A stretch of DNA of 64,000 nt, taken from IMG/VR virus record IMGVR_UViG_3300021197_001489, positions 1 through 64,000 of that record; one strand, given 5' to 3'. A model generated the notes under the pieces. The model saw only the letters and a list, made by a program, of their open reading frames with translations. It searched no databases and had not been told where the DNA came from. Made by a program: the position numbers and the translations under genes. This document shows positions 6,797 through 45,879 of this stretch, one piece after another (the first letter of the stretch is position 1; the number at the start of each line of letters is the position of its first letter).

Positions 6797-6817
6797 TTTA
6801 AAGAACAAAGGAAACAG

Positions 6818-22868: not shown

Positions 22869-23562
22869 AATAATAGTTTTAGCCAGCAGCGATATATCTG
22901 TGTCAATGGGCAACAAGTGCATTGCTCGCGCAAAAGAGTTTGGCATCGATGCAAAAGTAAGCAATGGTGTACACGGTGAAGATGCACACAAGATACTTGC
23001 TGACTTAGGATTACGCCAATACAAAGCAAAAATGAAAGGTGGGAGACTAGGAGTTCTTGGTTGTTTCCTCAGTCATTACTTCTTGTGGAATGAGTGTATA
23101 AAATCAAATGAACCTTACATGATATTAGAACATGATGCATATATGCTACGTCCATTGCCCAGTAAAGTTCTAAAACTTTTTCCTGACGTACTCAAGCTAG
23201 ACAGCTTAGATCCCTACTTAGAAACATACAATCAAGATCTGGAGGATCAGCCCAAAGAAGATAGCATATGGAGCTTGCGTGATAGAAAAGAACATGGGAA
23301 ACATATACACGAACGAGGATTATACTCAATTGGTGGTTACGGATACATAATTAAACCACATGCGGCCAAAGAAATCATTACAGAATGTAAGACGCATGGC
23401 TTTCGGCCTGCTGATCATCAGATACACACAACAACTAATATTGACATACATCACATTTCACCTAGTGTTGTAAGAATACACAAAGACTACCACGATCACG
23501 ATGCAATGAAAACACTGTCTCTGACACGCAACCTTGAGGCCAACAGCACACGAACCACATGA
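22858..23562 (+). CDS. Glycosyltransferase family 25-like
   Basis: GCFLSHYFLW, ILEHDA, GYIIKP, PAD motifs. Confidence 0.8.
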   Translation: MKCKIIVLASSDISVSMGNKCIARAKEFGIDAKVSNGVHGEDAHKILADLGLRQYKAKMKGGRLGVLGCFLSHYFLWNECIKSNEPYMILEHDAYMLRPLPSKVLKLFPDVLKLDSLDPYLETYNQDLEDQPKEDSIWSLRDRKEHGKHIHERGLYSIGGYGYIIKPHAAKEIITECKTHGFRPADHQIHTTTNIDIHHISPSVVRIHKDYHDHDAMKTLSLTRNLEANSTRTT

Positions 23563-24742: not shown

Positions 24743-27403
24743 ATGAGCTATGTTGACGCACTGTTTGATCGCGACAAAGACCGCATCCACGTAGTAGAAC
24801 GTATTGATGGACGCAGGGAGTATCGAGAATATCCTGCAAGCTATCAGTTTTATTATGCAGATCCTCGAGGCAAACACAAAAGTATCTATGGTACACCTGT
24901 AAGCAGATTCCACACACGAAACAACAAAGAGTTTCGCAAAGAACTGCGATTGCAATCAGGCAAACAGATCTTTGAAAGTGATATCAATCCGGTGTTTCGC
25001 TGTTTTGAAGAAAACTACAAAGATGACATTGCCCCTAAGTTACAAACAGCGTTCTTTGATATTGAAGTTGACTTTGATCCAGTACGTGGCTATTCGCCAA
25101 CCAACGATCCATTCAATGCAATCACTGCTATTTCTGTTTACTTGCAGTGGATGGAACAACTGGTAACATTGGTTGTTCCTCCCAAGAATATGAGCTGGGA
25201 AACAGCACAAGATATATGCAATCAGTTTGAAAACACCATGCTGTTTGAACGCGAAGAAGAAATGCTGAAGGTGTTTTTGGATCTTATCGAGGATGCAGAT
25301 GTACTAAGTGGCTGGAACAGCGAAGGGTATGATATTCCTTACACTGTTAACAGAGTTGCAAGAGTGTTGAGCAAAGATGATACAAGACGTTTTTGTTTGT
25401 GGAGCCAACTACCCAAGAAGCGCACGTTTGAACGCTTTGGTGCTGAAAACATTACATTCGATCTTATTGGCAGAGTGCATATGGATTACATGCAACTGTA
25501 TCGCAAGTATACCTATGAAGAGCGTCACAGTTACAGTTTGGATGCTATTGGTGAATATGAACTGGATGAGCGTAAGACTGCTTATGAAGGCACACTGGAT
25601 CACTTGTACAATCACAATTTTAAAACATTTATTGAATACAACAGGCAGGATACTGCACTGTTGGACAAGCTGGACAAGAAACTGCGATTCCTTGCTCTGG
25701 CAAATGAACTAGCGCATGCAAACACTGTGTTGCTACAAACCACAATGGGTGCTGTTGCTGTGACAGAGCAAGCAATTATCAATGAAGCACACGAACAAGG
25801 GTTGGTTGTTCCTAATAGACGTGAACGATTAACAGATGAAAACACTGCGGCTGCAGGTGCATATGTTGCATATCCCAAGAAGGGCATCCACGAATGGGTT
25901 GGTGCAATTGACATCAACAGTTTGTATCCTAGCGCCATTCGTGCGCTAAACATGGGCAACGAAACTATCATTGGGCAGTTGCGTCCAATCATGACTGATC
26001 GTTATATCAAAGACAAGATTTCAAACAAAAGTTCGTTTGCTATGGCGTGGGAAGGGCTGTTTGGTACACTGGAATACACTGCCGTTATGAAAATGGAAGT
26101 TGGAACTGAAATTACAGTTGACTGGGAAAACGGCGACGAAACAGTACACAGTGCAGCAGAAATATGGAAGATCATATTTGACAGCAATCGGCCTTGGATA
26201 CTGAGCGCAAATGGCACCATCTTTACATATGAAAAAGAAGGAGTTGTTCCGGGCTTGCTTGCACGTTGGTATAGAGAACGCCAAGAGATTCAAGCAAAAT
26301 TGCGAGCAACAACTGATCCTGATGAGCGTGAGTTTTTAGATAAACGTCAGCTAGTAAAGAAGATTAATCTAAATAGTCTGTATGGTGCTATTCTCAACCC
26401 AGGATGTAGGTTCTTTGATAAACGTATTGGGCAAAGCACAACACTAACTGGCAGGGCTATTGCACATCACATGGATGCATTTACAAATGAAGCAATCACA
26501 GGCACATATGACCATGTAGGTGATGCAGTAATCTATGGCGATACTGATTCAGTATACTTTAGTGCATGGCCTGTAATCAAGAAGGATGTTGAAGAAGGCA
26601 ACATGGAATGGAGCAAGGAAATTTGCATACAGCTCTATGATGCTATAAGTGATCAATTGAACGAAAGTTGGCCAGCATTTATGGAGCAAGCATTCCACGT
26701 TCCAAGGGCTAACGGTGTTATAATCAAAGGCGGTCGCGAGCTTATTGCAGACAGAGGGCTGTACATTACCAAGAAGCGTTATGCAGTAAACATATTTGAC
26801 TTAGAAGGCAAACGTTTGGATGTTGAAGGCAAGCAAGGCAAGATCAAAGCAATGGGTTTAGACTTGAAACGCAGTGACACTCCAAAAGTAATCCAAGACT
26901 TTTTGATGACGTTGCTGGTTAAAGTGCTTGCTGGTGCACAGCGTGAAGAAATAATTGAGATGATTAAAGCATTTAAGTATGACTTCAAGGAACGGCCTGC
27001 TTGGGAAAAAGGTTCTCCTAAGCGTGTTAACAACTTAACCAAGTACAGCGCAGAAGAAAAGAAACTGGGCAAAGCCAATATGCCAGGACATGTTAGAGCT
27101 GCAATGAACTGGAATTCAATGAAGAAAATGAACAGTGATAACTATTCACAGAGCATCATTGATGGCATGAAAACTATTGTTTGCAAACTAAAGCCCAATC
27201 CACTAAACTGGACCAGTATTGGCTACCCAACCGACGAACTGCACATTCCGCAGTGGTTTAAGGACTTGCCTTTTGATGATGCACTAATGGAAGCAACTGT
27301 GGTAGATCAAAAAATTGACAACTTGTTAGGTGTGCTTGCATGGGATCTAGCAAGTGAAACAGATACTTCAAATACCTTTAGCAGTTTGTTTGAGTTTGAG
27401 TAA
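24743..27403 (+). CDS. DNA polymerase family B with 3'-5' exonuclease
   Basis: DIEVD, WNSEGYD, YNRQD exo motifs; DINSLYPS, KINLNSLYG, YGDTDS, KKRY pol motifs; no intein. Confidence 0.97.
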   Translation: MSYVDALFDRDKDRIHVVERIDGRREYREYPASYQFYYADPRGKHKSIYGTPVSRFHTRNNKEFRKELRLQSGKQIFESDINPVFRCFEENYKDDIAPKLQTAFFDIEVDFDPVRGYSPTNDPFNAITAISVYLQWMEQLVTLVVPPKNMSWETAQDICNQFENTMLFEREEEMLKVFLDLIEDADVLSGWNSEGYDIPYTVNRVARVLSKDDTRRFCLWSQLPKKRTFERFGAENITFDLIGRVHMDYMQLYRKYTYEERHSYSLDAIGEYELDERKTAYEGTLDHLYNHNFKTFIEYNRQDTALLDKLDKKLRFLALANELAHANTVLLQTTMGAVAVTEQAIINEAHEQGLVVPNRRERLTDENTAAAGAYVAYPKKGIHEWVGAIDINSLYPSAIRALNMGNETIIGQLRPIMTDRYIKDKISNKSSFAMAWEGLFGTLEYTAVMKMEVGTEITVDWENGDETVHSAAEIWKIIFDSNRPWILSANGTIFTYEKEGVVPGLLARWYRERQEIQAKLRATTDPDEREFLDKRQLVKKINLNSLYGAILNPGCRFFDKRIGQSTTLTGRAIAHHMDAFTNEAITGTYDHVGDAVIYGDTDSVYFSAWPVIKKDVEEGNMEWSKEICIQLYDAISDQLNESWPAFMEQAFHVPRANGVIIKGGRELIADRGLYITKKRYAVNIFDLEGKRLDVEGKQGKIKAMGLDLKRSDTPKVIQDFLMTLLVKVLAGAQREEIIEMIKAFKYDFKERPAWEKGSPKRVNNLTKYSAEEKKLGKANMPGHVRAAMNWNSMKKMNSDNYSQSIIDGMKTIVCKLKPNPLNWTSIGYPTDELHIPQWFKDLPFDDALMEATVVDQKIDNLLGVLAWDLASETDTSNTFSSLFEFE

Positions 27404-28362: not shown

Positions 28363-29094
28363 ATGAGAGACTATCTACTAGACTTGGTTGAACACAGCTA
28401 TGATTTGGGCTGTATCGATCTTATTAAAATTACAGGCACAGACAAAGAAACAAACATTGATGGTCTAGCAGAAGACAAAAGTGTTGTGTTGAATGCAAAA
28501 TTCCATACGCCAGTTGCTGAGTTTATGGGTACATTTGGTATGCCCAACTTGTCCAAGCTAAAGATCTTGCTTAACATTGGTGAATACAAAGAAGGTGCTG
28601 ATATTTCTGTAACACACCAGGAGCGCAACGGCGAACAAGCACCAGTTGGGTTGCATTTTAAAAATGCTGCTGGCGACTTTAAAAACGACTATCGCTTTAT
28701 GGTAAGTGAAATTGTTTCAGAAAAGTTGAAAACTGTCAAGATGAAAGACGTTAACTGGACTGTGGAGTTTGAACCAACCACTGCTAGCATCATGCGACTA
28801 AAGATGCAAGCACAGGCAAACGCAGAAGAAACAACGTTTCAGACCAAAACTGAAGATGGTAACTTGAAGTTTTTGTTTGGTGATCATAGCACACACGCAG
28901 GTGACTTTGTGTTTCAGCATGATGTAGCAGGACAACTAACTCGCTCTTGGAGTTGGCCAGTGCAGCAATTTATTGCAATCATGAATTTAACTGGTGATAA
29001 AACTGTGCGTATTTCAGATGAAGGCGCTACAAAGATCACTGTTGATAGCGGCATTGCTGTATACAACTATATTTTGCCTGCTCAAAGCAAGTAG
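28363..29094 (+). CDS. Putative DNA polymerase sliding clamp (gp45-like)
   Basis: 243 aa alternating beta/alpha pattern; position in the polymerase operon. Confidence 0.55.
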   Translation: MRDYLLDLVEHSYDLGCIDLIKITGTDKETNIDGLAEDKSVVLNAKFHTPVAEFMGTFGMPNLSKLKILLNIGEYKEGADISVTHQERNGEQAPVGLHFKNAAGDFKNDYRFMVSEIVSEKLKTVKMKDVNWTVEFEPTTASIMRLKMQAQANAEETTFQTKTEDGNLKFLFGDHSTHAGDFVFQHDVAGQLTRSWSWPVQQFIAIMNLTGDKTVRISDEGATKITVDSGIAVYNYILPAQSK

Positions 29095-29714
29095 TGATTG
29101 ATAATCGATACATACAAGACTTCCACAAAGCACCATACATGTGGGGTCTATTGTGTATTGATTGTTGGGATGTTCCTGCAAATCGGCCATTTTATCAACG
29201 TGCAGTTGACCAACTGGAACAGTACCGCATTGGTCCTGTAGTTAATTGTTGTGCCGATTTACAACTTGACTATCAAGACAAAAGTGTATACAATACATTA
29301 AATGAATATCTTTGGACAAACAAAAATGAAACAGTGCTATCTAATTTAATAAACTGTGCCGGGCACCGAAAAACAGATCAACATTTGCACGATAAAATTT
29401 TTACTGGGTCTACTGTTCATCTAAGTAGTGTTGATACATTTCGCAATCATGTACAAAAATATTGGCCAAATGTGCAAGATTGGATTATATTAGGAAGTGC
29501 ATGGGGTATATGTGTGACACACGGGCCATTGGGTTTTAATAAGTTAGTCAGTGCTATGCCGTCAGTAAAGTTCAATGTATTTCCGGAGTGGAGTATACAA
29601 GACGAAAACGCAGAATATATCAATGAACAAACATTACAAGATGATTTTAACGTCTGGGCTCAGTATCCAGCAGTGCCAGGCTGTTATAGATGGATTCGTA
29701 GAGTAAAACAATGA
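29094..29714 (+). CDS. Isochorismatase/cysteine hydrolase-like protein
   Basis: LLCIDCW and ILGSAWGICV match the IDxQ and GxxxxxCV motifs; GTG start. Confidence 0.45.
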   Translation: MIDNRYIQDFHKAPYMWGLLCIDCWDVPANRPFYQRAVDQLEQYRIGPVVNCCADLQLDYQDKSVYNTLNEYLWTNKNETVLSNLINCAGHRKTDQHLHDKIFTGSTVHLSSVDTFRNHVQKYWPNVQDWIILGSAWGICVTHGPLGFNKLVSAMPSVKFNVFPEWSIQDENAEYINEQTLQDDFNVWAQYPAVPGCYRWIRRVKQ

Positions 29715-31249
29715 ACTTTGAACAAGATAATCTAACCAAAAAACAAAAAGACTACGCTATATTCCTTCCTGCAATCAGCAGTTTTTATGCTGGCTACATT
29801 GGCAAGGAACGATATCCTGTGGATGACAAAAACAAAAGCGTCATTGGTGATAGACTGCCCAAAGGATTGGGCAATATGGAATCAATGAACTGGCTTAACA
29901 GCAAAGAAAGTTTATTTCCATACAAGTACAGTTTGTACAGTGCCGGACATGCTGACATGGATCTAAGCAAGCATGTACCCAAAGAGGACATGGTTCGTAA
30001 CAGAGAAGCAGACACTATCATGCTTGCTGACTCGGGAGGGTTTCAGATTGCCAAAGGTGTGTGGCCAGGTGAGTGGGCCAACCCCAAAGACAAAAACGCT
30101 GAAAAAAAGCGTGAACAAGTTATTGCTTGGCAAATGGGCATTGCTACACATGGAATGACCATGGATATTCCTACATGGACTTACCTGGATAAAAAAGCTA
30201 GCGAGCTTTGCGGTATTCACAGCTATGATGATGCTGTAAACGCAACTCACTTTAACAACGAGTTTTGGATGGCTAACAGAGGTGGTGATCTCAAAATCCT
30301 AAACGTACTGCAAGGCAGTAACCACGCAGAAGCAGATCATTGGTATGACAAAATGAAAGGCTTTTGCAGCGACAAAGTGGATCGCCCTTTTAATGGTTGG
30401 GGCATGGGTGGACAAAACATGTGTGATGTTCACCTAGTGTTGAAAAGACTGGTTACGCTTATCCACGAAGGCTTATTGGAAAAAGGGCAGCATGACTGGA
30501 TGCACTTCTTAGGTACTAGCAAATTAGAGTGGGCATGTTTGCTCACTGATATACAACGCAGTGTTAGGCGTCATGCAAACAGTAACTTCACTGTATCTTT
30601 TGATTGTGCAAGCCCGTTTTTAGCAACTGCAAACGGACAGGTTTACAACAGCATACGCATTGAAGATAGAGGCAAGTGGAGCTATCAGATGGAACCTACC
30701 ATTGATAACAAAAAGTATGCTGGTGATAGTACACCGTTCCGTGATGCAGTGCTTGCTGATGGAGTACACAAACTGTTTGAAGACAGCCCAATCACTGAGC
30801 GTTTAACCATTGGTGACGTGTGCCACTATGCTCCAGGCATGCTAAACAAAATTGGCAAAGAAGGTAAAACATCATGGGACAGTTTTTCATATGCATTGCT
30901 TATGGGGCATAATGTCTGGATGCACATCGAAAGTGTGCAACGTGCTAATAGAGAATATGATGCAGGTGTAGTTCCAGGTATGCTAGTACAGGAAACATTT
31001 GACAGAATACTATTCCGCGAAGTGGTTGAGCGTGTGTTTGAACAGCAAGACTATGCCAAGTCAATGAACATCATCAACGAATACAGCAAGTTTTGGGACA
31101 GTGTCAAAGGCACAAGGGGTTTTACTGGCAAGCGTATTGTAAACGCTGCAACACAGTTTAACAGTTTATTTGATGTAGAAGAAGGCGATGTTGCAGACGA
31201 ACCAGAACTTGATCAAAAGGCACTGGAAGCACTTGACAACATGGCATAA
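29711..31249 (+). CDS. TGT/DpdA-like 7-deazaguanine transglycosylase
   Basis: DSGGFQ, HFLG, SFDCASP, GHNV motifs; co-located with folE, queD and queE. Confidence 0.75.
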   Translation: MNFEQDNLTKKQKDYAIFLPAISSFYAGYIGKERYPVDDKNKSVIGDRLPKGLGNMESMNWLNSKESLFPYKYSLYSAGHADMDLSKHVPKEDMVRNREADTIMLADSGGFQIAKGVWPGEWANPKDKNAEKKREQVIAWQMGIATHGMTMDIPTWTYLDKKASELCGIHSYDDAVNATHFNNEFWMANRGGDLKILNVLQGSNHAEADHWYDKMKGFCSDKVDRPFNGWGMGGQNMCDVHLVLKRLVTLIHEGLLEKGQHDWMHFLGTSKLEWACLLTDIQRSVRRHANSNFTVSFDCASPFLATANGQVYNSIRIEDRGKWSYQMEPTIDNKKYAGDSTPFRDAVLADGVHKLFEDSPITERLTIGDVCHYAPGMLNKIGKEGKTSWDSFSYALLMGHNVWMHIESVQRANREYDAGVVPGMLVQETFDRILFREVVERVFEQQDYAKSMNIINEYSKFWDSVKGTRGFTGKRIVNAATQFNSLFDVEEGDVADEPELDQKALEALDNMA

Positions 31250-31261
31250 CCAGTGTATAGT
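31233..31261 (+). promoter_or_regulatory. sigma70-like promoter inside the end of the TGT-like gene
   Basis: TTGACA-17 nt-TATAGT. Confidence 0.65.
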
Positions 31262-31284
31262 TATAGAACAATAAGGAGTACTCA

Positions 31285-31473
31285 ATGTCCAATCCTGAAA
31301 AACGTTATGAATACTTGGTAAAAGAACACAAGCGACTTCACGATCTGGTTGAATACATGAAAAATGACAGCGTTAGTGGCGAAGCAATGGCTAAAGCTAA
31401 AAAACGTAAACTTGCAGCCAAAGAAGAAATGATCCAACTAAAACAAGAACTGGGACACACAGATGAATCGTGA
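31285..31473 (+). CDS. YdcH/DUF465-like coiled-coil protein
   Basis: EHKRLH...KKRKLAAKEEM pattern; AAGGAG RBS. Confidence 0.55.
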   Translation: MSNPEKRYEYLVKEHKRLHDLVEYMKNDSVSGEAMAKAKKRKLAAKEEMIQLKQELGHTDES

Positions 31474-31966
31474 CGGACATGAAGCTGTTAAATTCTTTTA
31501 CGGCACTGAAGTAGAACACACACCAGCATATGGTAAGCAAACACTGTTTGTGGTAGGTGTACAACCAGTTGAAGATATTGAGAAAGCATACAAAGACTGC
31601 GAACACATCTTTTTTGGTGCTAATCACAGCTACGATCCTCCTAAAGACAGCATTGAAGAATATGGAGAATGGGAATACATGATCAAGTATTTCCTCAAGC
31701 AGGGCATATTGTGTACGCTAGATGTGCCATACAGTCAACTGGAAGAGATTCACGATGATGGTTACGATGAATACAACAACTTTATAGCACAGTTGCGTAT
31801 CAGTATTCCTTATGTCAGCTCGTACAACTATAACACAATGGTCAAAATTGATGATAAAGACTTTGACGCAACCAACCCGGGCGTGTGGACACACAACCTA
31901 CACAAACTTATGGACAGGACTGTGTTTACTCCATGGAGTGACTACAGCAAAGACGAGGTAGTATAA
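31463..31966 (+). CDS. Hypothetical protein of the deazaguanine cluster
   Basis: GTEVEHT, HIFFGANHS; coupled between TGT-like and T-fold genes. Confidence 0.6.
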   Translation: MNRDGHEAVKFFYGTEVEHTPAYGKQTLFVVGVQPVEDIEKAYKDCEHIFFGANHSYDPPKDSIEEYGEWEYMIKYFLKQGILCTLDVPYSQLEEIHDDGYDEYNNFIAQLRISIPYVSSYNYNTMVKIDDKDFDATNPGVWTHNLHKLMDRTVFTPWSDYSKDEVV

Positions 31967-32391
31967 TGAATCAAGAACAGCGTGAAAATATTGAACACAG
32001 TAAAGATGTTGCTCGTCGATCAATTTGGGTAACATTTCAGCAAGAAGGAATTCACAAGTACCCTGCAGCACTGGATGACCCAAAGCTGGCAACAGGCGAC
32101 TGGGATGACGTTTCTTTTTTAGGATACCCACATCGTCATATGTTTCACTTCAAAGTGGCAATTGATGTATTTCACAATGACAGAGATATTGAGTTTATTC
32201 AATTCCAGCGTTGGCTAAAGCGTCTTTACAGCGGAGATATCTTACAACTTGATTATAAAAGTTGCGAGATGATTGCAGACGAGCTATATACACACATAGC
32301 TGGCAAGTATCCAGGCCGTAACGTTGTTATTAATATAAGCGAAGATGGCGAAAACGGATGCGTTATCAGTTACCCTTCAACTAGTCATTAA
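31966..32391 (+). CDS. T-fold (QueD/PTPS-like) protein
   Basis: EGIH, HRHMFH, EFI, SCEMIA, SEDGENG resemble the H/HxH/E pattern of PTPS. Confidence 0.55.
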   Translation: MNQEQRENIEHSKDVARRSIWVTFQQEGIHKYPAALDDPKLATGDWDDVSFLGYPHRHMFHFKVAIDVFHNDRDIEFIQFQRWLKRLYSGDILQLDYKSCEMIADELYTHIAGKYPGRNVVINISEDGENGCVISYPSTSH

Positions 32392-32401
32392 GGAAAGCAT
32401 T

Positions 32402-32677
32402 ATGGCTAATCAATATAGAAATCCACGCACAGAAGCTGTGTGGAATGACTTAGACGCATACTTGTTGTTTTGTCAAAACTATGGGTATCGTTACAATCCC
32501 GAAGACCTTTACAACAACAAAAAGTATCCTTACCAGCAATTCCGCAAATACTCCGCTGGCAAGAACTGCAAAAATATGTGGGAGGAAGATACCAAGCGTA
32601 TGAATGGTTTCCGTCCACGACACAACGACAATAATAGAAATAACAACCAAGGCCGTTATCACAGCGGCAGGAGATAA
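32402..32677 (+). CDS. Hypothetical protein
   Basis: ORF from ATG 32402; Asn/Arg-rich tail. Confidence 0.55.
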   Translation: MANQYRNPRTEAVWNDLDAYLLFCQNYGYRYNPEDLYNNKKYPYQQFRKYSAGKNCKNMWEEDTKRMNGFRPRHNDNNRNNNQGRYHSGRR

Positions 32678-32680
32678 GCT

Positions 32681-33874
32681 ATGCGTAAACTCTTCTACAT
32701 GGGCCTCGAAAGCTATGAGGCACGTTACACTCTTCAATTGACTGATTGGAATCGGCGTGTTTTTGAGCGTAGAGGCCTTGATGTTGTGTATGTCCCAGGT
32801 AACACTATTGATGATTCAAAAAGCATCAGTGTAGGACAGGTGCTTGACGCACATGGACGCAGTTACTTTGGCATGAGTCAGATCATGAATCTGGTACAGA
32901 TGATGCGCAACGGTGAATGTGGAGGAGGAGACGTAGTTTATTTTGAAGATATGTTCCAACCTGGAATTGAAAGTCTTCCATATATTATGGACCAGATTTC
33001 AGAAGAACAAAGACCCCAAGTTTATGTACGCTGTCTAGCCCAAGCAATTGATCCGGATGATTTCGTGCATGTATGGGGCATGTCAAAGTGGATGGGCCTA
33101 TACGAAAAGATGGTGAATGAGTTTGCAACAGTGTTGGCTACCAATGAAGAAATGGTAGCACACATGAAAATTGCAGGCTGGGAAGCACCCATCTATAACA
33201 TCTCAGGCCTGGCATTTGGCAAACAAGAAGTTCGTGAAAGGTTGGGCGAAGCGATAAAGCCTTTTCACGAACGCTCTAACAGAATTGTGTTTACTGCACG
33301 TTTTGACCAAGAAAAACAACCAGACTTTTATATGGATCTAGCAGAACGCTATTCAGAACAGTATCCAGGCAAACAAACATTCGCTATACTACAAGGCGGA
33401 CCGCTACGCAGTAACAACGACAAGTACATCGAACGTGCAAGAGCGTTGCAAGCAAGCGGTATTCTTGAGATTCACGAGGATCTTAAAAAGGATCAATACT
33501 ACAAGATTGTAAACGACAGTCGTGTACTTTTTAACTGTGCGTTGCAAGACTGGGTAAGTAACACTGTCAGTGAAGCAGACGCACTGGGCTGTAATGTTTT
33601 GTATCCAGCCTATCGCAGTTTCCCTGAAACATTCGCCAATGATCCAGATCGGCTTTATGTTCCATGGAGCATTGACGATGCTGAAAACAAACTGACTAAC
33701 TTGTTACGCAACCCACATCACAACATGGGTTTGATCTCTGATTGGACAGATGGCACAATTGACAGAGTCATTGACATCATGGAAGGCAATGGCGAACAAT
33801 GGTTGCGCACAGGCAATCGCTACAGAGATCATGTTGCTGGCGCAAAGTACGCAGTAACAAAGATTGAAGCATGA
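32681..33874 (+). CDS. GT-B fold glycosyltransferase
   Basis: FTARFDQEKQP and TVSEADALGC...YP nucleotide-sugar-binding motifs. Confidence 0.75.
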   Translation: MRKLFYMGLESYEARYTLQLTDWNRRVFERRGLDVVYVPGNTIDDSKSISVGQVLDAHGRSYFGMSQIMNLVQMMRNGECGGGDVVYFEDMFQPGIESLPYIMDQISEEQRPQVYVRCLAQAIDPDDFVHVWGMSKWMGLYEKMVNEFATVLATNEEMVAHMKIAGWEAPIYNISGLAFGKQEVRERLGEAIKPFHERSNRIVFTARFDQEKQPDFYMDLAERYSEQYPGKQTFAILQGGPLRSNNDKYIERARALQASGILEIHEDLKKDQYYKIVNDSRVLFNCALQDWVSNTVSEADALGCNVLYPAYRSFPETFANDPDRLYVPWSIDDAENKLTNLLRNPHHNMGLISDWTDGTIDRVIDIMEGNGEQWLRTGNRYRDHVAGAKYAVTKIEA

Positions 33875-34833
33875 GCAAGATAGTAATCATCACAGGTGCT
33901 GGTGGCTACATTGGTGGACAAACAGCAATATACTTCAAAGAACAAGGCTGGGTAGTCGTTGGTATTGATCGTCGGCCTTGTCCGCCGCACCTAGCTCAAT
34001 GGTATACCAGTTACCACGAAGCAGAGTTCTCATCACCCAAGGGTTTAATGTGGTTCACTGAGTATCGTCCTGATGCTATTGTGCATTGTGCTGGCTCAAG
34101 TCTTGTTGGCCCAAGTATAAAAGATCCACGCACATATTATGAAAACAATTTTATTGCAACCAAGCAATTGTTAGACTGGATGGTCGAGCATGGTGTACAC
34201 AGTAAATTTATTTTTTCAAGCAGTGCCGCAGTATATGGCGATCCTGTAACTACACCTATCTATGAAGCTGATCCGAAGGATCCTATTTCACCTTATGGTA
34301 TTAGCAAGCACATGGTTGAGCAACTGCTAGAAACTTACAGTGTAGCATACAACATTAATTATGTTGGGCTACGCTACTTCAACGCTGCTGGTGCTGATCC
34401 TCTCGGGCGACACGGGCAAGAAAAAGCTGCTACACACATTATTGCCCGCGTAATGGAAGCAATTCGTGACAACAAGGTGTTTACGCTGTTTGGTACAGGA
34501 CTTGCCACTGATGATGGAACTTGTGTGCGTGACTATGTGCATGTTGCAGACATTGCCAAAGCACACTGTTATGCAACAGAGCAGCGTGTGGTTCCAGGTT
34601 TTTACAATCTAAGCACAGGGCGCGGTGCCAGTAACTTGGAAATTATTGCCAAGTGTTGTGCCGTTAGCGGCAGCAAGCCACAGGCAGTGGTCGAAGGACC
34701 TACACGAGAAGGTGACCCGGACATACTGGTTGCCAACAACGAAAAGTTTTTCAAAATATCAAACTGGCAAAACGAATATCACATTGACGATATCGTTGAG
34801 CATGCATGGAAATGGTATACACGTGAGCTTTGA
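33871..34833 (+). CDS. galE: UDP-glucose 4-epimerase / NAD-dependent epimerase
   Basis: TGAGGYIG, SSSAAVYG, YGISK, LRYFNAAGA, RDYVHV. Confidence 0.9.
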   Translation: MSKIVIITGAGGYIGGQTAIYFKEQGWVVVGIDRRPCPPHLAQWYTSYHEAEFSSPKGLMWFTEYRPDAIVHCAGSSLVGPSIKDPRTYYENNFIATKQLLDWMVEHGVHSKFIFSSSAAVYGDPVTTPIYEADPKDPISPYGISKHMVEQLLETYSVAYNINYVGLRYFNAAGADPLGRHGQEKAATHIIARVMEAIRDNKVFTLFGTGLATDDGTCVRDYVHVADIAKAHCYATEQRVVPGFYNLSTGRGASNLEIIAKCCAVSGSKPQAVVEGPTREGDPDILVANNEKFFKISNWQNEYHIDDIVEHAWKWYTREL

Positions 34834-35416
34834 CCGGTTTACAGAGTTTGAACAAGCATTAAGCAAGTTTACTGGCGCACCGTATGTGGTCCTCACTGAC
34901 TGTTGCACACATGCTATTGAACTTTGTTTGCGCTATAAAACCCCAGGGCCTTGTGTTATACCTGCACACACCTATCTAAGCATTCCGATGACTTTTCACA
35001 AACTAGACATTCCATACTACTATGACACAAACAATGACTGGCAGTATGAATATAGACTAGTACCTAGCAACATCTGGGATAGTGCCAGAGCATTTGATCG
35101 TGGTATGTATCGTACAGGTGCGTTACAGTGTCTAAGTTTTGGACACAGCAAGCGACTTGAAATTGGGCATGGTGGTGCTATTCTCACAAACAAAAAACAC
35201 GAGTATGATGCACTACGGCGAATGGCATATGATGGAAGAGATCTAAATATCTCACCGTGGCAAGATCAAAAAGTATTCCATGTTGGGTATCACTATAAAC
35301 CCAGTATTGAAGATTGCGAGAAAGGTATACACATGCTCGCAGAAAACAAACTTAAAACCAAAGAGTCACAATTGGTAGAGTATCCTAACTTATTAGATAT
35401 ACAAATCCAGGATTGA
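34823..35416 (+). CDS. Short DegT/DnrJ/EryC1-type PLP aminotransferase
   Basis: TDCCTHAIEL, WDSA, CLSFGHSK (PLP Lys), GGAILT; probable GTG start 34823. Confidence 0.75.
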   Translation: MSFDRFTEFEQALSKFTGAPYVVLTDCCTHAIELCLRYKTPGPCVIPAHTYLSIPMTFHKLDIPYYYDTNNDWQYEYRLVPSNIWDSARAFDRGMYRTGALQCLSFGHSKRLEIGHGGAILTNKKHEYDALRRMAYDGRDLNISPWQDQKVFHVGYHYKPSIEDCEKGIHMLAENKLKTKESQLVEYPNLLDIQIQD

Positions 35417-35417
35417 C

Positions 35418-35446
35418 TTGACAGTTTACATAAATAACCGTACAAT
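35418..35446 (+). promoter_or_regulatory. Dual promoter: sigma70 box with a late box in its spacer
   Basis: TTGACA-17 nt-TACAAT with ATAAATA at 35430-35436. Confidence 0.65.
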
Positions 35447-35496
35447 ATAATTAACTTATTGTGGTCATCCTCGACCCAAACTCGGAGAATCATTAA

Positions 35497-36192
35497 ATGA
35501 CAATCAAAGAAAAAATTAAACAAAGACTACAAGACGCCAACGTTAGATACTGGGCCAACGACAACATTGCTGATTACCTTGAAGAAGGTGAAAAGCAACA
35601 GTTACTTGAAGAGGCAGTTCCTGCTTTTGAAAACATGTTACAACATCTGCTAATTGATACTGAGACAGACCCTAACAGTCAAGATACTGCAAGGCGTATG
35701 GCTAAGATGTATATCAATGAAATTATGAGCGGACGTTACGAGAAAATGCCTAATCCAAGTGCATTTCCTAACTACATTGAAGGTGGTTATGAAGGCATGT
35801 TGGTAGTGAGAAGCGAACTTACAAGTTTATGTTCGCACCATCACCAAACAGTAAAAGGTGTGGCATACATTGGTATCATTGCTGGTCCTAAACTATTGGG
35901 ACTTAGCAAATATACAAGAATTGCACAGTGGTGTGCTAGACGCGGGACACTACAAGAAGAACTAAATGTAATGATTGCTGATGCAATACAAAGAGAAACT
36001 GGCAGTGACAATATTGGTGTATATGTACAAGCAACACATGGTTGTTGTGAGAACCGTGGCATTATGGCAACCAGTAGTTTGACTCAGACTACAGTTTTAC
36101 GTGGTGCGTTTAAAAAAGATGCTGATGTTAGAAAAGAATTTATTGACAATGTAAAATTGCAACAAGACAATAGTAGGTATACTTGTAGTTAA
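35497..36192 (+). CDS. folE: GTP cyclohydrolase I
   Basis: TARRMAK, SLCSHHH, GLSKYTR, LQEE, HGCCENRG. Confidence 0.95.
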   Translation: MTIKEKIKQRLQDANVRYWANDNIADYLEEGEKQQLLEEAVPAFENMLQHLLIDTETDPNSQDTARRMAKMYINEIMSGRYEKMPNPSAFPNYIEGGYEGMLVVRSELTSLCSHHHQTVKGVAYIGIIAGPKLLGLSKYTRIAQWCARRGTLQEELNVMIADAIQRETGSDNIGVYVQATHGCCENRGIMATSSLTQTTVLRGAFKKDADVRKEFIDNVKLQQDNSRYTCS

Positions 36193-36249: not shown

Positions 36250-37320
36250 ATGAAACTATTTAAATTCCTGGCAGTAGCCCTGTCAGTGTTATTCTTCAGT
36301 GTTTCAGCAAATGCTGGAGATAAACTAAAGGTCGGATTTGTATATGTTGGGCCTATAGGTGACCATGGATGGACTTATCGTCACGACATTGGTCGTCAAC
36401 AAGTAGAAGAAGCATATGGAGACAAAGTTGAAACAGTGTTTGTTGAAAGTGTGCCAGAAGGTCCTGATGCTGAACGTGTAATGCGTTCAATGGCAAAAGG
36501 TGGAGCAGACATTATCTTTGCAACCAGTTTTGGCTATATGCCATCAATGCTTAAAGTTGCCAAGGAGTTTCCAGATGTAGCATTTGAACATGCAACTGGT
36601 TACAAACGTGCAGACAATATGGCAACATATGGCTTACGTCTATATCAAGCAAGACATGTACAAGGTATTATTGCAGGTATGATGACAAAGACAAACAAGA
36701 TTTGTTATGTTGCTGCTTTCCCAATTCCAGAAGTTATTCGTGAGATTAACACATATTACATGGGTGCAAAGAAGATGAACCCTGACGTAGAGATCATGAT
36801 TACTTGGGCCAACACCTGGTATGATCCAGGCAAAGAGTCACAGGCTGCTAAAGTTATGATGGCTGAAGGTTGCGACATGGTTGCACAGCACACTGATTCA
36901 CCTGCTCCATTGCAGGCTGCACAATTAGAAGGTAAATTAGGCTTTGGTCAAGCAAGTGATCAAATTAAATTTGCTCCTAAGGCACAATTGACTGCAACTA
37001 TTGACAACTGGGGTCCTTACTATGTAAAGCGAGTTGGCGAAGTAATGAACGGCACTTGGGCAACTGGTGACTACTTTGGTCATATGAATGACGGTTCCGT
37101 TCAAATGGCACCGTTTACTAACATGCCAGCAGATGTTGCTGCTAAAGCAAACGAAATCAAGAATGCTATCGAAGCAGGCAAGTATTTTGCATTTACTGGT
37201 CCACTCAAGGACAACAAAGGCAAAGTACAACTTAAAGCGGGCGAAATTGCAGACGACGGACATCTTAATAGTATGATGTATTATGTAGAAGGCATTAACG
37301 CACAAGTGCCTGGTAACTAA
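36250..37320 (+). CDS. BMP-family ABC substrate-binding protein (purine/nucleoside-type)
   Basis: Signal peptide; VGFVYVGPIGDHGWTYRH, IFATSFGY, WANTWYDPGKE, QHTDSPAP. Confidence 0.88.
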   Translation: MKLFKFLAVALSVLFFSVSANAGDKLKVGFVYVGPIGDHGWTYRHDIGRQQVEEAYGDKVETVFVESVPEGPDAERVMRSMAKGGADIIFATSFGYMPSMLKVAKEFPDVAFEHATGYKRADNMATYGLRLYQARHVQGIIAGMMTKTNKICYVAAFPIPEVIREINTYYMGAKKMNPDVEIMITWANTWYDPGKESQAAKVMMAEGCDMVAQHTDSPAPLQAAQLEGKLGFGQASDQIKFAPKAQLTATIDNWGPYYVKRVGEVMNGTWATGDYFGHMNDGSVQMAPFTNMPADVAAKANEIKNAIEAGKYFAFTGPLKDNKGKVQLKAGEIADDGHLNSMMYYVEGINAQVPGN

Positions 37321-37322
37321 AA

Positions 37323-38183
37323 ATGATTCCAGTTATTGATTTCACAAGCGAAACAGTACTGGAAGAGATTCGCGAAGCCTACACAACAGTAGGCTTCGCT
37401 GTCCTTACCAATACACTTAACCAACAAGACCAACAAACCATGGAAAACTGGTTTGACTTTATGAAGCAGTTCTTTGAACTAGACTTGCATACCAAAAAGA
37501 AATACAGTTACCAAGCAGAAAACAATCTTGGATACAGTGTTATGGGCGCAGAAAATGTAGACCCAACTGCTCCTAAAGACATGAAAGAAAGTTTCAATTA
37601 TAACAACACTCGTATGCCAGACGAACTATGGCCTACTGAGATAGACTTTTTTAAAGTTACAGCATTAAATTCTGTGCGTATTGCAGATAATTTAACTTTG
37701 CGTATCCTTGAAAAGTTTGATACAATCCTCGACTGCGGCACTACACTGGTAGATGCGCATCAGGATCCTTATAATACTACTCGTGTTATTCACTATCCTG
37801 CGTACACAGGTCCACTTGAAGATAAACAAATGAGAATAGGAGAACACAGTGATTACGGCACTATTACACTTCTTTGGCAGATTAATGACGTTCCGGGGCT
37901 CGAAGTCCAAGATCTCGAAGGCACGTGGCACCCGGTGCCGTATGCAAATGATGGAGTAGTTGTTAACATAGGCGACTTACTACAGCGTTGGACCAATGAC
38001 TACTTCAAATCAACAAAACACAGAGTTGTAAACAGCCACATAGATCAAACACGTTACAGCATGCCGCATTTTGTAGACCCTACCCCAGGAACAATAGTGG
38101 CAAACTTGCGTGACGAGGATGCAAAGTATGATCCTATCGAAAGCAAGGAATACTTGATGTGGCGATTAGCACAGAGTTATTAA
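37323..38183 (+). CDS. 2OG-Fe(II) oxygenase, isopenicillin N synthase-like
   Basis: HSD...H (GEHSDYGTITLL, KHRV) and RYS 2OG-binding motif. Confidence 0.9.
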   Translation: MIPVIDFTSETVLEEIREAYTTVGFAVLTNTLNQQDQQTMENWFDFMKQFFELDLHTKKKYSYQAENNLGYSVMGAENVDPTAPKDMKESFNYNNTRMPDELWPTEIDFFKVTALNSVRIADNLTLRILEKFDTILDCGTTLVDAHQDPYNTTRVIHYPAYTGPLEDKQMRIGEHSDYGTITLLWQINDVPGLEVQDLEGTWHPVPYANDGVVVNIGDLLQRWTNDYFKSTKHRVVNSHIDQTRYSMPHFVDPTPGTIVANLRDEDAKYDPIESKEYLMWRLAQSY

Positions 38184-38706: not shown

Positions 38707-39183
38707 ATGCCATATTACAGCACAAAAACATACGGACACAACATTGGACTAAGTGCAGTGTTTCGCCAACCACACGCAGATCATTCGCATTGCAAGTTCT
38801 TGCATGGATACAGTTTACAATTTAAATTTGTATTTGGTTGCAGAGATCTTGACAACAAAAACTGGGCAGTTGACTTTGGTGGCTTAAAGCCGCTTAAACA
38901 ATGGCTCGAAGATAGTTTTGATCATAAAGTTGTATTAGATGAAAATGATCCTCACTTGGATGACTTTCGAGTACTAGAAGAAAAAGGCCTAGCACAACTT
39001 AACATTGTTGCAGGTGTTGGCGCAGAAAAGTTTGCAGAACATGCATGGCGCTTTGCTGACAAACTTATCCGTGAAGCAACTGATGACCGTTGTTGGTGCG
39101 ACAGTGCAGAGTGTGCAGAACATGGTGCTAACAGTGCCATCTATACACCATTTATAATCCGCAAAGAAAGGTTTACTGAATAA
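38707..39183 (+). CDS. queD: 6-carboxytetrahydropterin synthase
   Basis: [32 protein letters not shown]. Confidence 0.8.
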
Positions 39184-39800
39184 TGTCATTGATCCCAATG
39201 GTAGTAGAGACTACCTCTAAAGGCGAACGTGCATACGATATCTACAGTCGCTTGCTAAAAGATCGCATTGTAATGCTAAACGGTGTAGTTGAAGATCAGA
39301 TGGCAAACAGTGTAATTGCACAGTTGCTATTTTTAGAATCAGAAGATCCTGACAAAGACATCTTGCTATATATTAATTCACCAGGCGGGCAAGTAAGTGC
39401 AGGACTTGGTATATATGATACAATGCAGTTTATCAAGTGTGATATCAGCACTGTGGTTATTGGACAAGCATGTTCAATGGGCAGTTTCCTTGCACAAGCA
39501 GGCACAGCAAAAAAGCGTATTGTGCTTCCTGAATCGCGCACAATGATTCACAGAGTAAGTTCAGGCACACGTGGCACATCAGGTACTGTTCATGTACAAG
39601 AACTTCAATTTGAAGATGCATTGCGCAGTATGGAAGAGTCTAAGAAAGTCAATCGACGTCTTACTGAACTTTATGTAAAACATAACACAGCAGGCAAGAC
39701 CTATGATGAGATGGCAGAAACAATGAAGTTTGACACATTTCTAACAGCACAGGAAGCAGTTGAATGGGGACTTGCAGACCGGGTAATGGAGAATAGATAA
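39183..39800 (+). CDS. clpP: ATP-dependent Clp protease proteolytic subunit
   Basis: [23 protein letters not shown] (Ser), MIH (His). Confidence 0.95.
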
Positions 39801-40642
39801 TGCCTTTTAATATTGAGGCAACTAAAAAAATATCTGTGCTGTGCGCAACACGAGGTCGTCCACAGATGATCATGGAAAGTATGCAAAGCATGCTAGCCAC
39901 TGCTGACGATCCTGACAGTATTGAGTTTTTACTTGCCATCGATGATGACGATCAGGATACCATTGATTTTGTACAAAGTGATATTGTACCTGAGTTTGAA
40001 GAACGTGATCAAGACCTATATGCATTTGTGCAACCAAGATTAGGGTATGCTAGACTTAATGAATATTACAATCAGTTAGCTGGGGAGAGCCATGGAGAAT
40101 GGTTGATTGTGTGGAACGATGATGCCAGAATGGAAAGTCAAGGCTGGGATACTGAAATCCTCAGCCACAGCGGCAAATTTGCAGTACAGCGGTTTAACGA
40201 CAACCACGGACACCCATATGCTATTTTTCCAGTTCTTCCACGTGATTGGATTATAATGTATGGTTGTATATCACCGCACCAGATTGTTGATGGATGGGTT
40301 AGCCAAGTGTGTTACATGAATGACGCAATAATTCAACTTAAAAGTACTTGCTTTCATGACAGACATGACTTGACAGGTAACAACAATGATACTACCTATC
40401 AAGAGAGAAATCCACAGCAGAACGAAGGCAATCCAGAAAATCCCAAAGACTTTCTCTATCCAGCAACACACCAGTTAAGAATACAGTGGGGCTTCAAAAT
40501 GGAATGGCTACGCAAGTTGCTCAAGCAAGACAATGGCTATCTTGACAGAGTCAAGCGGGGTGAAATTGATGTATGGACTAAAATGCGCGAGAATGATCCT
40601 AAAAAGTTTTTGGGCACGTTTAAGGTAGACGTAGGTGGTTAA
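39800..40642 (+). CDS. GT2-like glycosyltransferase
   Basis: ATRGR, IDDDD, WNDDA, GWD; paralog of the 22167 ORF. Confidence 0.7.
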   Translation: MPFNIEATKKISVLCATRGRPQMIMESMQSMLATADDPDSIEFLLAIDDDDQDTIDFVQSDIVPEFEERDQDLYAFVQPRLGYARLNEYYNQLAGESHGEWLIVWNDDARMESQGWDTEILSHSGKFAVQRFNDNHGHPYAIFPVLPRDWIIMYGCISPHQIVDGWVSQVCYMNDAIIQLKSTCFHDRHDLTGNNNDTTYQERNPQQNEGNPENPKDFLYPATHQLRIQWGFKMEWLRKLLKQDNGYLDRVKRGEIDVWTKMRENDPKKFLGTFKVDVGG

Positions 40643-45679: not shown

Positions 45680-45879
45680 GCGGACTTTATATACGCAAAT
45701 TCATTGATCGTGTGCAAGCATGCGACAGCAAGGGTGTTAACGACTTTGTTTGGCCACTTGCTGATGCAAAGAACTTACACGGCGATATCACAAAATTGCT
45801 CCTGGACATTGAAGCACTACAGCAAGCTCGCAGCAACGAACAAATCACGCAAGTTGAGGTATCTGGTGGAGATTGGTAA
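45676..45879 (+). CDS. Small hypothetical protein
   Basis: GTGA overlap, 67 aa. Confidence 0.5.
   Translation: MSGLYIRKFIDRVQACDSKGVNDFVWPLADAKNLHGDITKLLLDIEALQQARSNEQITQVEVSGGDW

Follow-up and report, generated by a model that had tools for sequence, protein, structure and literature searches.

To examine a candidate DNA-modification locus in a marine phage, the 64,000-nucleotide stretch of virus record IMGVR_UViG_3300021197_001489 (hereafter, the window) was analyzed by profile, sequence and structure searches. The block at 29.1-42.1 kb is a 7-deazaguanine insertion module, and a GT4-type GT-B glycosyltransferase almost always sits next to modules of this type in phages and bacteria. This association points to an undescribed, sugar-decorated 7-deazaguanine in DNA, a reading that we put at about 0.5 and that rests on sequence, predicted structure and gene context rather than on chemistry.

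The original prediction had described a contiguous run of cysteine hydrolase-like, TGT/DpdA-like, unknown, second T-fold, GT-B, GalE and DegT-type genes followed by folE, with queD and queE nearby and no recognizable queC or queF in the window, all downstream of a polymerase/clamp operon. These genes were found where they had been placed, and the observation is confirmed. All lie on the + strand, packed with overlaps of -1 to -32 nt or short gaps. Its interpretation, in which an epimerized amino-sugar is attached to a deazaguanine base with the T-fold and the cysteine hydrolase as tailoring steps, is only partly supported.

Organization of the module

The module is embedded in a replication block headed by a family B DNA polymerase (24743-27403, +; Pfam DNA_pol_B, 1e-33, with an exonuclease domain), which is 51% identical to the polymerase of Sinorhizobium phage Phosso and is kept upstream of the module in 78 of 80 related loci. 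It is followed by a 243-aa protein (28363-29094, +; phrog_12062, unknown function), present just upstream of the transglycosylase in 82 of 83 loci. This protein is possibly a sliding clamp, but that identity rests only on the annotation of the Phosso homologue as a sliding clamp beta, and the PA5oct homologue is annotated as a structural protein.

The first gene of the run (29094-29714, +; 206 aa) had no Pfam, PHROG or NCBIfam hit. Its likeness to an isochorismatase/cysteine hydrolase exists only as a lead from the Atlas (score 0.85; TM 0.57 through a proxy model), although LLCIDCWD and GICVTHG motifs are present. It is a rare accessory gene, occurring in only 3 of 80 related loci (designated L006, L011 and L033).

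The 512-aa protein (29711-31249, +) is a divergent, DpdA-like protein with a predicted TGT fold, and is the predicted enzyme inserting the deazaguanine base into DNA. It had no hit in any sequence library searched or in PDB sequences. Its AF2 model, however, has a pLDDT of 90, and the top 50 Foldseek matches in the PDB are all tRNA-guanine or archaeosine transglycosylases (probability 1.0, E about 1e-6); viral TGT/DpdA-like models also match in BFVD. The three TGT aspartates are found in DSGGFQ, LD-P and FDC contexts, and D107, S108, G110, D152, H265, G268 and D298 are invariant. An hhalign comparison with the ACP17 DpdA gave a probability of 96.4 (E 1e-9). Homologues lie next to QueE, QueC, QueF and FolE in PA5oct and Vibrio phage 2.275.O.

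Downstream lies a 62-aa ORF of uncertain reality (31285-31473, +), absent from the original prediction, with a weak DUF465 hit (E 5e-4, below the cut-off) and no tblastn match in related loci. The next gene (31463-31966, +; 167 aa, hereafter g167) encodes a core protein of unknown function, as originally proposed. It is present between the transglycosylase and DpdL in 78 of 80 related loci, with homologues in ACP17 (next to its DpdA) and PA5oct. Its AF2 model has a pLDDT of 91.7 but no significant PDB fold match; E16, E18, D87, K128 and D131 are invariant.

The second T-fold gene (31966-32391, +) encodes a DpdL homologue, a QueD-like T-fold proposed to be the 7-carboxy-7-deazaguanine decarboxylase of dDG phages (PMC10516641). 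By tblastn it shares 54% identity with ACP17, 60% with PA5oct and 32.5% with phiST CGPG_00067, and it matches phrog_17812 (7e-34). Its L52-x3-H56-R57-H58 residues match the described DpdL signature, LxxxHRH. It is a core gene proposed to make 7-deazaguanine from CDG, and not a tailoring enzyme of a glycoside. A second small ORF absent from the original prediction (32402-32677, +; g110) encodes a basic-tailed protein between DpdL and the GT-B. It had no family hit but was found by HMM in nearly all GT-anchored loci of the clade, and its start was chosen at the ATG behind an AAGGAAAG site.

The GT-B (32681-33874, +) is a GT4-type glycosyltransferase of the "long" subtype. Glycos_transf_1 was detected in 8 of 8 family members (best 8e-12), although the window's own protein scores 23.9 bits, below the gathering score of 26.4. 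E10, R15-Y16-T17, R207, E211-K212, Q289 and E298 are invariant, and the R/K/E residues expected of a nucleotide-sugar enzyme are kept. The protein is homologous to the product of the gene between DpdA and DpdL in ACP17 (7e-17) and PA5oct (8e-13). Its stop is overlapped by 4 nt by the start of a UDP-hexose 4-epimerase gene, galE (33871-34833, +; TIGR01179, 269 bits against a cut-off of 262; Pfam Epimerase, 9e-53).

The DegT/DnrJ/EryC1-like PLP protein is probably encoded at 34802-35416 (+; 204 aa), half the usual size. It matches PF01041 with 42.5 bits, above the cut-off, but only over parts of the profile. The half size is conserved in relatives (cluster median 197 aa), as are the invariant D93, S112-F113 and K117. 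The gene usually lies just before folE, but it is absent from many relatives and its homologues also sit in generic glycosyltransferase islands of immuto_2-6A and S-SCSM2R. It is less specific to the module, and the proposal of an amino-sugar is therefore weak.

The precursor genes are confirmed: FolE, the first step to CDG (35497-36192, +; Pfam 2e-37, phrog_2197 4e-43); QueD, of the 6-carboxytetrahydropterin synthase type with C-x3-H-G-Y (38707-39183, +; Pfam PTPS 1e-12, phrog_2389 3e-40); and QueE, a radical SAM 7-carboxy-7-deazaguanine synthase (41265-42137, +; phrog_2076 QueE-like, 2e-51; 45% identical to the annotated QueE of BUCT-ZZ01). A phosphoribosyltransferase gene (40678-41265, +; Pfam Pribosyltran 1e-12, phrog_8995) overlaps the queE start by 1 nt, and its pairing with folE and queE recurs in about 24 related loci. 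No QueC, QueF, Gat or YhhQ was found in the window by tblastn, and the PP-loop gene at 42113-42895 is NadE.

Linkage of the glycosyltransferase to the deazaguanine module

Failure of the sugar genes to be co-conserved with the TGT-like gene had been named in advance as grounds for rejecting the prediction. The GT-B is co-conserved far beyond chance synteny and so passes this test: it was present in 48 of 48 related viral DpdL loci with 2.5 kb or more downstream, and the linkage held in 74 of 74 GT-anchored loci. Most of these viral loci come from one clade, so the counts are not independent. The linkage was nevertheless also found in six cultured phage lineages that use two different DpdA types (PA5oct, ACP17, BUCT-ZZ01, Xanthomonas X1, Phosso and BCSR5), and in bacterial genomes the GT lies beside a DpdA-like gene in every locus with enough flank. 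More than ten different gene orders retain it. GalE tracks one GT-B subtype, following the long subtype in 22 of 22 loci and the short subtype in 2 of 24.

Some observations weigh against reading this association as glycosylation of the base. Some bacterial islands have the GT and the transglycosylase without DpdL, so the acceptor cannot depend on DpdL chemistry, and a distant GT relative in Xanthomonas phage PhiXhv-12 lies in a GlmS/deacetylase context without deazaguanine genes.

Comparison with known systems

Among the closest known systems is the DpdL/DpdA3-type system of Cellulophaga phage phiST, proven to carry plain dDG (Cui, Hutinet et al., NAR 2023, PMC10516641). Both have FolE, QueD and QueE without QueC, a QueD-like DpdL with the LxxxHRH signature, and a very divergent TGT-like transglycosylase next to the polymerase genes. 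The transglycosylase of the window belongs, however, to another, larger family (about 510 aa), with an hhalign probability of only 73.6% to phiST DpdA3, and phiST lacks the GT4 glycosyltransferase, g167 and g110 within 7 kb.

Pseudomonas jumbo phage PA5oct (Wroclawvirus) shares the transglycosylase family (30% identity), the GT-B, DpdL (60%), g167 (45%) and QueE, and its DNA resists enzymes in a way that points to modified G of as yet undetermined chemistry (PMC12191111). Its gene order is DpdA-like, GT, DpdL, with no GalE or DegT-like gene beside them, and g167 lies about 27 kb away.

The T4-type DNA glucosyltransferases and other glycosylated bases (glucosyl-5hmC, arabinosyl-5hmC, base J) offer a functional analogy, in which a GT-B fold enzyme uses a nucleotide sugar to decorate an already modified base as an anti-restriction mark. 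The GT of the window has no sequence-family match to the T4 enzymes, is GT4-like with an EX7E-type motif, and its acceptor would be a purine analogue rather than a hydroxymethylpyrimidine.

The bacterial Dpd restriction-modification system (dpdA-K; PMC10164549) also relies on a TGT-like DNA transglycosylase that inserts a 7-deazaguanine. Bacterial relatives of the window's enzyme sit in islands with nucleases, HEPN and methylase genes, but there, short of a full search for dpdB-K, the transglycosylase is paired with a GT4 enzyme (plus or minus DpdL, and a Vut_1 transporter) rather than with DpdB and DpdC.

In vertebrate tRNA, mannosyl- and galactosyl-queuosine carry a sugar added to a 7-deazaguanine derivative by a Glycos_transf_1-type enzyme. 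The acceptor there is the cyclopentenediol of queuosine, which cannot be made here, and the connection to the window's GT is limited to an Atlas feature-level lead, with no QTMAN_N match. No paper found in the literature search describes a glycosylated deazaguanine.

Alternative interpretations

The module could instead make plain 2'-deoxy-7-deazaguanine, with the GT-B, GalE and DegT-like genes belonging to a separate glycan pathway (virion, host envelope or another target) that merely lies beside it. The example of phiST, the DegT-like homologues in generic GT islands, the other sugar genes in the window (GT25, a second GT and PMM) and the PhiXhv-12 relative favor this view, but chance neighborhood does not explain why the GT stays next to DpdL or DpdA-like genes across unrelated phage lineages, two DpdA types, bacterial islands and many gene orders, and we consider it unlikely. 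Slightly less likely still, the GT-B may work in the pathway without decorating the DNA base, by transiently glycosylating a free precursor, by acting on the transglycosylase or another protein, or as a required partner of the transglycosylase in the way DpdB serves bacterial DpdA. Its strictest partner is indeed the transglycosylase and not DpdL, plain 7-deazaguanine has no obvious hydroxyl to serve as acceptor, and ACP17 DpdA plus DpdL alone did not give dDG in E. coli. The invariant donor-binding and catalytic residues and the dedicated GalE of one subtype argue instead for real sugar transfer with a choice of donor, which is typical of a final decoration under diversifying selection.

An action of both enzymes on tRNA, as a queuosine-like modification and its glycosylation, is improbable. 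The fold matches are tRNA enzymes, and the Atlas lists a bacterial cluster named tRNA-queuosine mannosyltransferase among feature neighbors of the GT, as a lead only. However, no PF01702 or QTMAN_N match was found, the gene is embedded between the polymerase and other replication genes, relatives sit in phages with G-modified DNA and in bacterial islands with nucleases and a methylase, and phage DpdA families act on DNA according to the literature. Least likely is that the TGT-like protein is an aGPT-Pplase-type enzyme of thymidine hypermodification, a class considered to be related to the TGT fold: no Pfam family, aGPT-Pplase families included, matches any of 48 family members, DSGGFQ and FDC are guanine-TGT motifs, and the context is FolE, QueD, QueE and DpdL, with QueC, QueF and YhhQ in relatives.

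A predicted glycosylated 7-deazaguanine

The best explanation is a DpdL-type 7-deazaguanine DNA-modification system with an extra, conserved glycosylation step. The gene content, the DpdL homology, the linkage of the GT-B and the coupling of GalE to one subtype are established by the analysis, whereas base exchange in DNA is inferred from the fold, the catalytic aspartates and the gene context, and the attachment of a sugar to the base remains an inference without chemical data from any GT-bearing phage. The conversion of GTP to 7-carboxy-7-deazaguanine is established chemistry of the FolE, QueD and QueE families; the removal of the carboxyl group by DpdL to give 7-deazaguanine is a proposal from the literature and is not proven. 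The divergent TGT-fold enzyme would then exchange guanine in DNA for the deazaguanine base, and the GT4 enzyme, the obligate neighbor of this transglycosylase family, would transfer a hexose from a nucleotide sugar to it, either on DNA or on the free base before insertion. The G-modified DNA of PA5oct, which has this trio, is in line with such a system, as is the failure of ACP17 DpdA plus DpdL in E. coli, for which the authors suspected missing enzymes (PMC10516641).

In this view, GalE would supply a 4-epimerized UDP-hexose to the long GT subtype present here, and the half-size DegT-like protein, together with the variable cassettes in relatives, may tailor the sugar. Deazaguanine bases in phage DNA are already known, and what differs here is the predicted sugar on such a base. 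The result would be a bulky G-derived base that blocks restriction enzymes.

Gene content of the deazaguanine module

Every gene named in the original prediction was found at its predicted position on the + strand, in an operon-like array with overlaps of 1-32 nt or short gaps, so its observation is confirmed. Searches against Pfam, NCBIfam and PHROGs identified GalE, FolE, QueD (phrog_2389, 3e-40), QueE (phrog_2076, 2e-51), a Glycos_transf_1-type GT-B and a DegT-family match, with PolB just upstream. No match to QueC, QueF, Gat or YhhQ of Vibrio phage 2.275.O was detected by tblastn within the 64-kb window, and the PP-loop gene at 42113-42895 is NadE; the possibility of a QueC hidden in this gene was rejected, as it scores 168 bits against NAD_synthase and 18.7 bits against QueC. 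Megablast of the block against 50,697 phage records returned no match.

Three corrections to the predicted gene list were required. The DegT-like gene most likely starts at 34802 and encodes 204 aa, about half the normal size. The assignment of the 206-aa ORF as a cysteine hydrolase rests only on an Atlas lead (feature score 0.85; TM 0.57 through a proxy model) and on Asp and Cys motifs visible in the sequence: Pfam, PHROGs, NCBIfam and PDB sequence searches gave nothing for this protein, and it is present in only 3 of 80 related loci. In addition, two small ORFs (31285-31473 and 32402-32677) lie inside the span.

A phosphoribosyltransferase overlaps the QueE start by 1 nt (40678-42137 for the pair). 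The combination of this gene with FolE and QueE recurs in about 24 related loci, and BUCT-ZZ01 has QueE next to an XGPRT; conversion of a deazaguanine base to a nucleotide is a conceivable, purely speculative role. A PnrA/Bmp-type nucleoside-binding lipoprotein gene followed 2 nt later by a 2OG-Fe(II) oxygenase with a DIOX_N domain (36250-38183) is kept as a pair after FolE in two related loci (L010 and L067). A 937-aa protein (14419-17232) has a ParB N-terminal-like domain (PHROG ParB-like, 5e-9); because bacterial DpdA needs a ParB-like DpdB, a link is conceivable. The window also encodes DnaJ, a ClpB/ClpA-like double AAA+ protein (766 aa) and ClpP (5984-9118 and 39183-39800), as well as auxiliary metabolic genes (42113-42895, 45873-46397, 55496-56830, 62367-63500): NadE, a second phosphoribosyltransferase, a TctA-family transporter and a Rieske-type ring-hydroxylating oxygenase alpha subunit.

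A divergent protein with a predicted TGT fold

The 512-aa protein matches no model in Pfam, PHROGs or NCBIfam and no PDB sequence, even when a 51-sequence profile was used, and none of 48 homologues hits any Pfam family, including the curated TGT model PF01702, at E values up to 1. It nevertheless belongs to a large family, with 907 representatives at 50% identity. Only the fold search identified it: the AlphaFold2 model is confident (pLDDT 90, pTM 0.90), and the top 50 PDB matches are all tRNA-guanine or archaeosine transglycosylases (prob 1.0, E about 1e-6, TM by target about 0.5). Among the viral models of BFVD, it matches proteins named tRNA-guanine transglycosylase or queuine tRNA-ribosyltransferase, and a Vibrio phage nt-1 protein.

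The sequence carries ADSGGFQ, MDIP and SFDC motifs, whose aspartates (D107, D152 and D298) are invariant in 48 homologues. By motif, these correspond to the three functional aspartates of TGT, namely the DSGGFQ Asp, the substrate-binding Asp and the nucleophile Asp in FDC (D102, D156 and D280 in Z. mobilis), although this equivalence rests on motif identity rather than on a residue-level structural alignment. The CxCxxC motif of the TGT zinc site (CxCxxC...H) is absent from the sequence. An alternative reading as an aGPT-Pplase of thymidine hypermodification was rejected, because no Pfam family matches any of the 48 members and because the genomic context is deazaguanine biosynthesis.

Homologues at 26-31% identity occur in three cultured phage groups: PA5oct-like Pseudomonas jumbo phages, where the gene lies a few genes from QueE; Vibrio phage 2.275.O, where it lies next to QueF, a YhhQ-type transporter, QueC, Gat and FolE; and Sinorhizobium phage Phosso. 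Profile comparison with hhalign links the family to the DpdA of Acidovorax phage ACP17 (prob 96.4, E 1e-9), whereas the match to the DpdA3 of phiST (CGPG_00065) is weak (prob 73.6, E 2.9e-5 over 82 columns). The ACP17, Xanthomonas X1 and BUCT-ZZ01 enzymes form their own family.

The second T-fold protein is a DpdL homologue

The 141-aa protein is 54% identical to the ACP17 protein, 60% to the PA5oct protein and 32.5% to phiST CGPG_00067. Cui et al. named this last protein DpdL, proposed it as the CDG decarboxylase that yields 7-deazaguanine, an activity that remains unproven, and found it in phages with FolE, QueD, QueE and DpdA but no QueC (PMC10516641). The window protein has no Pfam PTPS hit itself but carries the described change of signature, L52-x3-H56-R57-H58 instead of CxxxHGH, and the gene set of the window fits the proposed pathway. 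In Vibrio phage Bakedbeans (gp176, locus L092, 9221-10372) and Chryseobacterium phage MA9V-3 (locus L096, 9431-10312), DpdL appears as the C-terminal part of longer proteins (383 and 293 aa), fused to an unknown N-terminal domain.

A GT4-type glycosyltransferase is linked to the module

The GT-B is homologous to the gene that lies between DpdA and DpdL in ACP17 (E 7e-17) and in PA5oct (E 8e-13). All eight diverse family members tested hit Glycos_transf_1 (PF00534, best 8e-12), although the window's own score of 23.9 bits is below the cut-off of 26.4. Residues E10, R15-Y16-T17, R207, E211-K212, Q289 and E298 are invariant in 62 sequences, an arrangement typical of GT4 enzymes that bind a nucleotide sugar, with diphosphate-binding R/K residues and an EX7E-type motif; position 290 is D here and E in most members. 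No Pfam or PHROG hit to the T4 DNA beta/alpha-glucosyltransferases was obtained, and the likeness to these enzymes is functional only.

To examine the linkage, 80 IMG/VR loci carrying the transglycosylase were retrieved and their ORFs clustered. The gene order is a clamp-like 243-aa protein (g243), the DpdA-like gene, the 167-aa protein g167, DpdL, the small protein g110 and the GT-B. Of the loci that have DpdL and at least 2.5 kb downstream, 48 of 48 hold a GT of this family. In the reverse direction, of 80 loci retrieved with the GT, 74 of 74 with enough upstream sequence hold DpdL, 73 within 3 kb and one elsewhere in the locus. These viral counts come largely from one marine clade and are not independent events.

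In cultured phages, profile HMMs place the GT beside DpdL in PA5oct, ACP17, cyanophage BUCT-ZZ01, Xanthomonas X1, Phosso and Burkholderia BCSR5, but not within 7-10 kb of DpdL in phiST, RHph_I1_18, Bakedbeans, Ahp1, D479 or MA9V-3. ACP17, X1 and BUCT-ZZ01 use a different DpdA family from that of the window, yet keep the GT. A search for related loci with the ACP17 GT alone found only ACP17 itself. A second tblastn with the short GT type across all 50,697 phage records recovered the same DpdL-bearing phages and one distant group, Xanthomonas phage PhiXhv-12 and relatives. The PhiXhv-12 protein (locus L211, 8749-9852) scores 108 bits against the family HMM, where true members score 215 or more, lacks the ExRYT motif and lies next to GlmS and a BshB-like deacetylase with no deazaguanine gene within 9 kb; it may belong to another sugar system in 227-kb phages.

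In bacterial genomes, the GT is adjacent to a transglycosylase of the window's family in every locus with enough flank. The arrangement is GT, DpdL, DpdA-like, QueD in Magnetospirillum (M. aberrantis, locus L191, 2250-12059); a Vut_1 transporter, GT, DpdA-like in Rhodobacterales (Pseudooctadecabacter jejudonensis, locus L207, 944-13519); and DpdA-like, DpdL, GT in Methylobacterium. Neighbouring genes include HEPN_LA2681, a CoiA-like nuclease, MASE1 histidine kinases, a C5 DNA methylase and a second GT4, which is the look of a defence or restriction-modification island rather than a prophage, and of an undescribed Dpd-like defence island. More than ten gene orders therefore keep the linkage, which inherited synteny alone does not explain.

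The core gene g167 (31463-31966) is present in 78 of 80 loci and also in ACP17 and PA5oct. Its AlphaFold2 model is confident (pLDDT 91.7), yet it has no significant PDB fold match, no hit in Pfam, PHROGs, NCBIfam or PDB sequences, and an Atlas search scored at chance level. Comparison of g167 by hhalign with candidate neighbours in PA5oct, X1 and BUCT-ZZ01 was negative.

Sugar supply and tailoring genes

The GT comes in two subtypes: a long one of about 400 aa, 64-88% identical to the window's, which is followed by GalE in 22 of 22 loci, and a short one of about 350 aa, 20-24% identical, which is followed by GalE in 2 of 24 loci. The window's GalE scores 269.2 bits against TIGR01179 (cut-off 262.3) and carries the GxxGxxG (GAGGYIG) and YxxxK (YGISK) motifs, and its start overlaps the GT stop by 4 nt. 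This fits a GT whose donor is a 4-epimerised UDP-hexose.

The DegT-like protein matches PF01041 with 42.5 bits (cut-off 19.8), and the PLP lysine and aspartate are kept, with S112-F113-x3-K117 and D93 invariant in 30 homologues. However, it lacks the full two-domain architecture of about 360-390 aa: it has 204 aa, the median in relatives is 197 aa, and only profile positions 23-76 and about 170-220 are matched. A truncated pseudogene was rejected because the short length is conserved in the 30 homologues. The gene occurs with both GT subtypes (15 of 17 long, 9 of 24 short) and usually lies just before FolE, but its homologues also lie in large GT islands of Flavobacterium phage immuto_2-6A and cyanophage S-SCSM2R, away from any annotated deazaguanine gene. 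An amino sugar is therefore weakly supported.

In relatives (loci L006-L085), the stretch between the GT-B/GalE and the DegT-like gene holds a variable cassette: a radical SAM/SPASM gene (342 aa) with a 119-aa partner, a B12-binding radical SAM gene (about 610 aa), and the unknown families c28 and c29. GFO/IDH/MocA-like and ADH_N-like genes lie elsewhere, between the transglycosylase and g167, in four loci. Further sugar-related genes are scattered in the window (22858-23562, 39800-40642, 50423-52738): a GT25, a second glycosyltransferase (phrog_14945), a phosphomannomutase and a radical SAM/SPASM enzyme.

Relatives and environmental occurrence

The polymerase is 51% identical to that of Sinorhizobium phage Phosso and 46% to that of Atu_ph07, and related contigs reach 262 kb. 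The sequence at 29500-35450 is present, nearly identical, in 17 marine or seawater DNA runs from ten or more studies, one of which covers the block without a difference; these runs, kept as contigs, are uninformative for base modification. Marine metatranscriptome contigs 90-95% alike cover the transglycosylase through the GT but not GalE, which shows relatives in those samples but does not prove transcription.

Interpretation and significance

The block is, with high confidence, a DpdL-type 7-deazaguanine DNA-modification system, and the GT likely belongs to it functionally. The best reading is a glycosylated deazaguanine base (probability of about 0.5), with GalE feeding the GT. The gene content, the sequence motifs and the conserved linkage come directly from the sequence analysis, and the TGT fold from a confident model; the exchange of guanine in DNA for a 7-deazaguanine and the transfer of a sugar to the base are inferred from them, and the decarboxylation of CDG is a proposal of the literature. 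The interpretation offered in the original prediction, an epimerised amino sugar attached to a deazaguanine with the T-fold and the cysteine hydrolase as tailoring steps, is only partly supported: the amino sugar and both tailoring roles are not supported as stated. Full-text literature searches found no report of a glycosylated deazaguanine in DNA, and one thing that sets this module apart from the DpdL-type system of phiST is the linked GT.

Several findings weigh against this reading. The DNA of phiST is fully substituted with plain dDG and no GT lies near its DpdL, so DpdL-type systems can work without one, and immuto_2-6A, which has a DegT-like gene in a GT island, was reported to carry fdPreQ1 rather than a glycoside. 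Plain 7-deazaguanine offers no hydroxyl as acceptor, and because the Rhodobacterales islands lack DpdL, the acceptor must be something common to deazaguanines, or the GT acts in another way. The non-independence of the viral counts and the distant GT relative of PhiXhv-12, which has no deazaguanine gene within 9 kb, also count against it. On the other side, the authors of the PA5oct study infer a modified G and note QueE and PTPS genes, without chemistry (PMC12191111), and Cui et al. report that ACP17 and phiST dpdL expressed with their dpdA in E. coli gave no dDG, suggesting that other enzymes may be required (PMC10516641). In ACP17, the GT and g167 lie exactly there.

A broader reading, which remains tentative, is that the GT4 enzyme and the divergent DpdA-like transglycosylase form a widespread two-gene core, found in marine jumbo-like phages, PA5oct-like Pseudomonas phages, ACP17, Xanthomonas X1, a cyanophage and bacterial defence-type islands. 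This core would write a glycosylated 7-deazapurine into DNA, the first sugar-bearing purine analogue in a genome, and the sugar would be diversified by GalE, radical SAM and PLP cassettes, as expected under an arms race.

Deazaguanine DNA modifications are a major phage counter-defence, and eight chemical forms are known, none of them glycosylated. The inferred G modification of the therapy-relevant phage PA5oct and the failure to rebuild dDG from the ACP17 DpdA and DpdL now both have a concrete candidate for the missing component: the GT, and also g167, encoded between or beside those genes. The same gene pair in bacterial islands suggests a new type of self-marking restriction-modification system. 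A sugar-bearing purine analogue would also matter for nanopore base-calling of marine viromes and for enzymes that recognise modified DNA.
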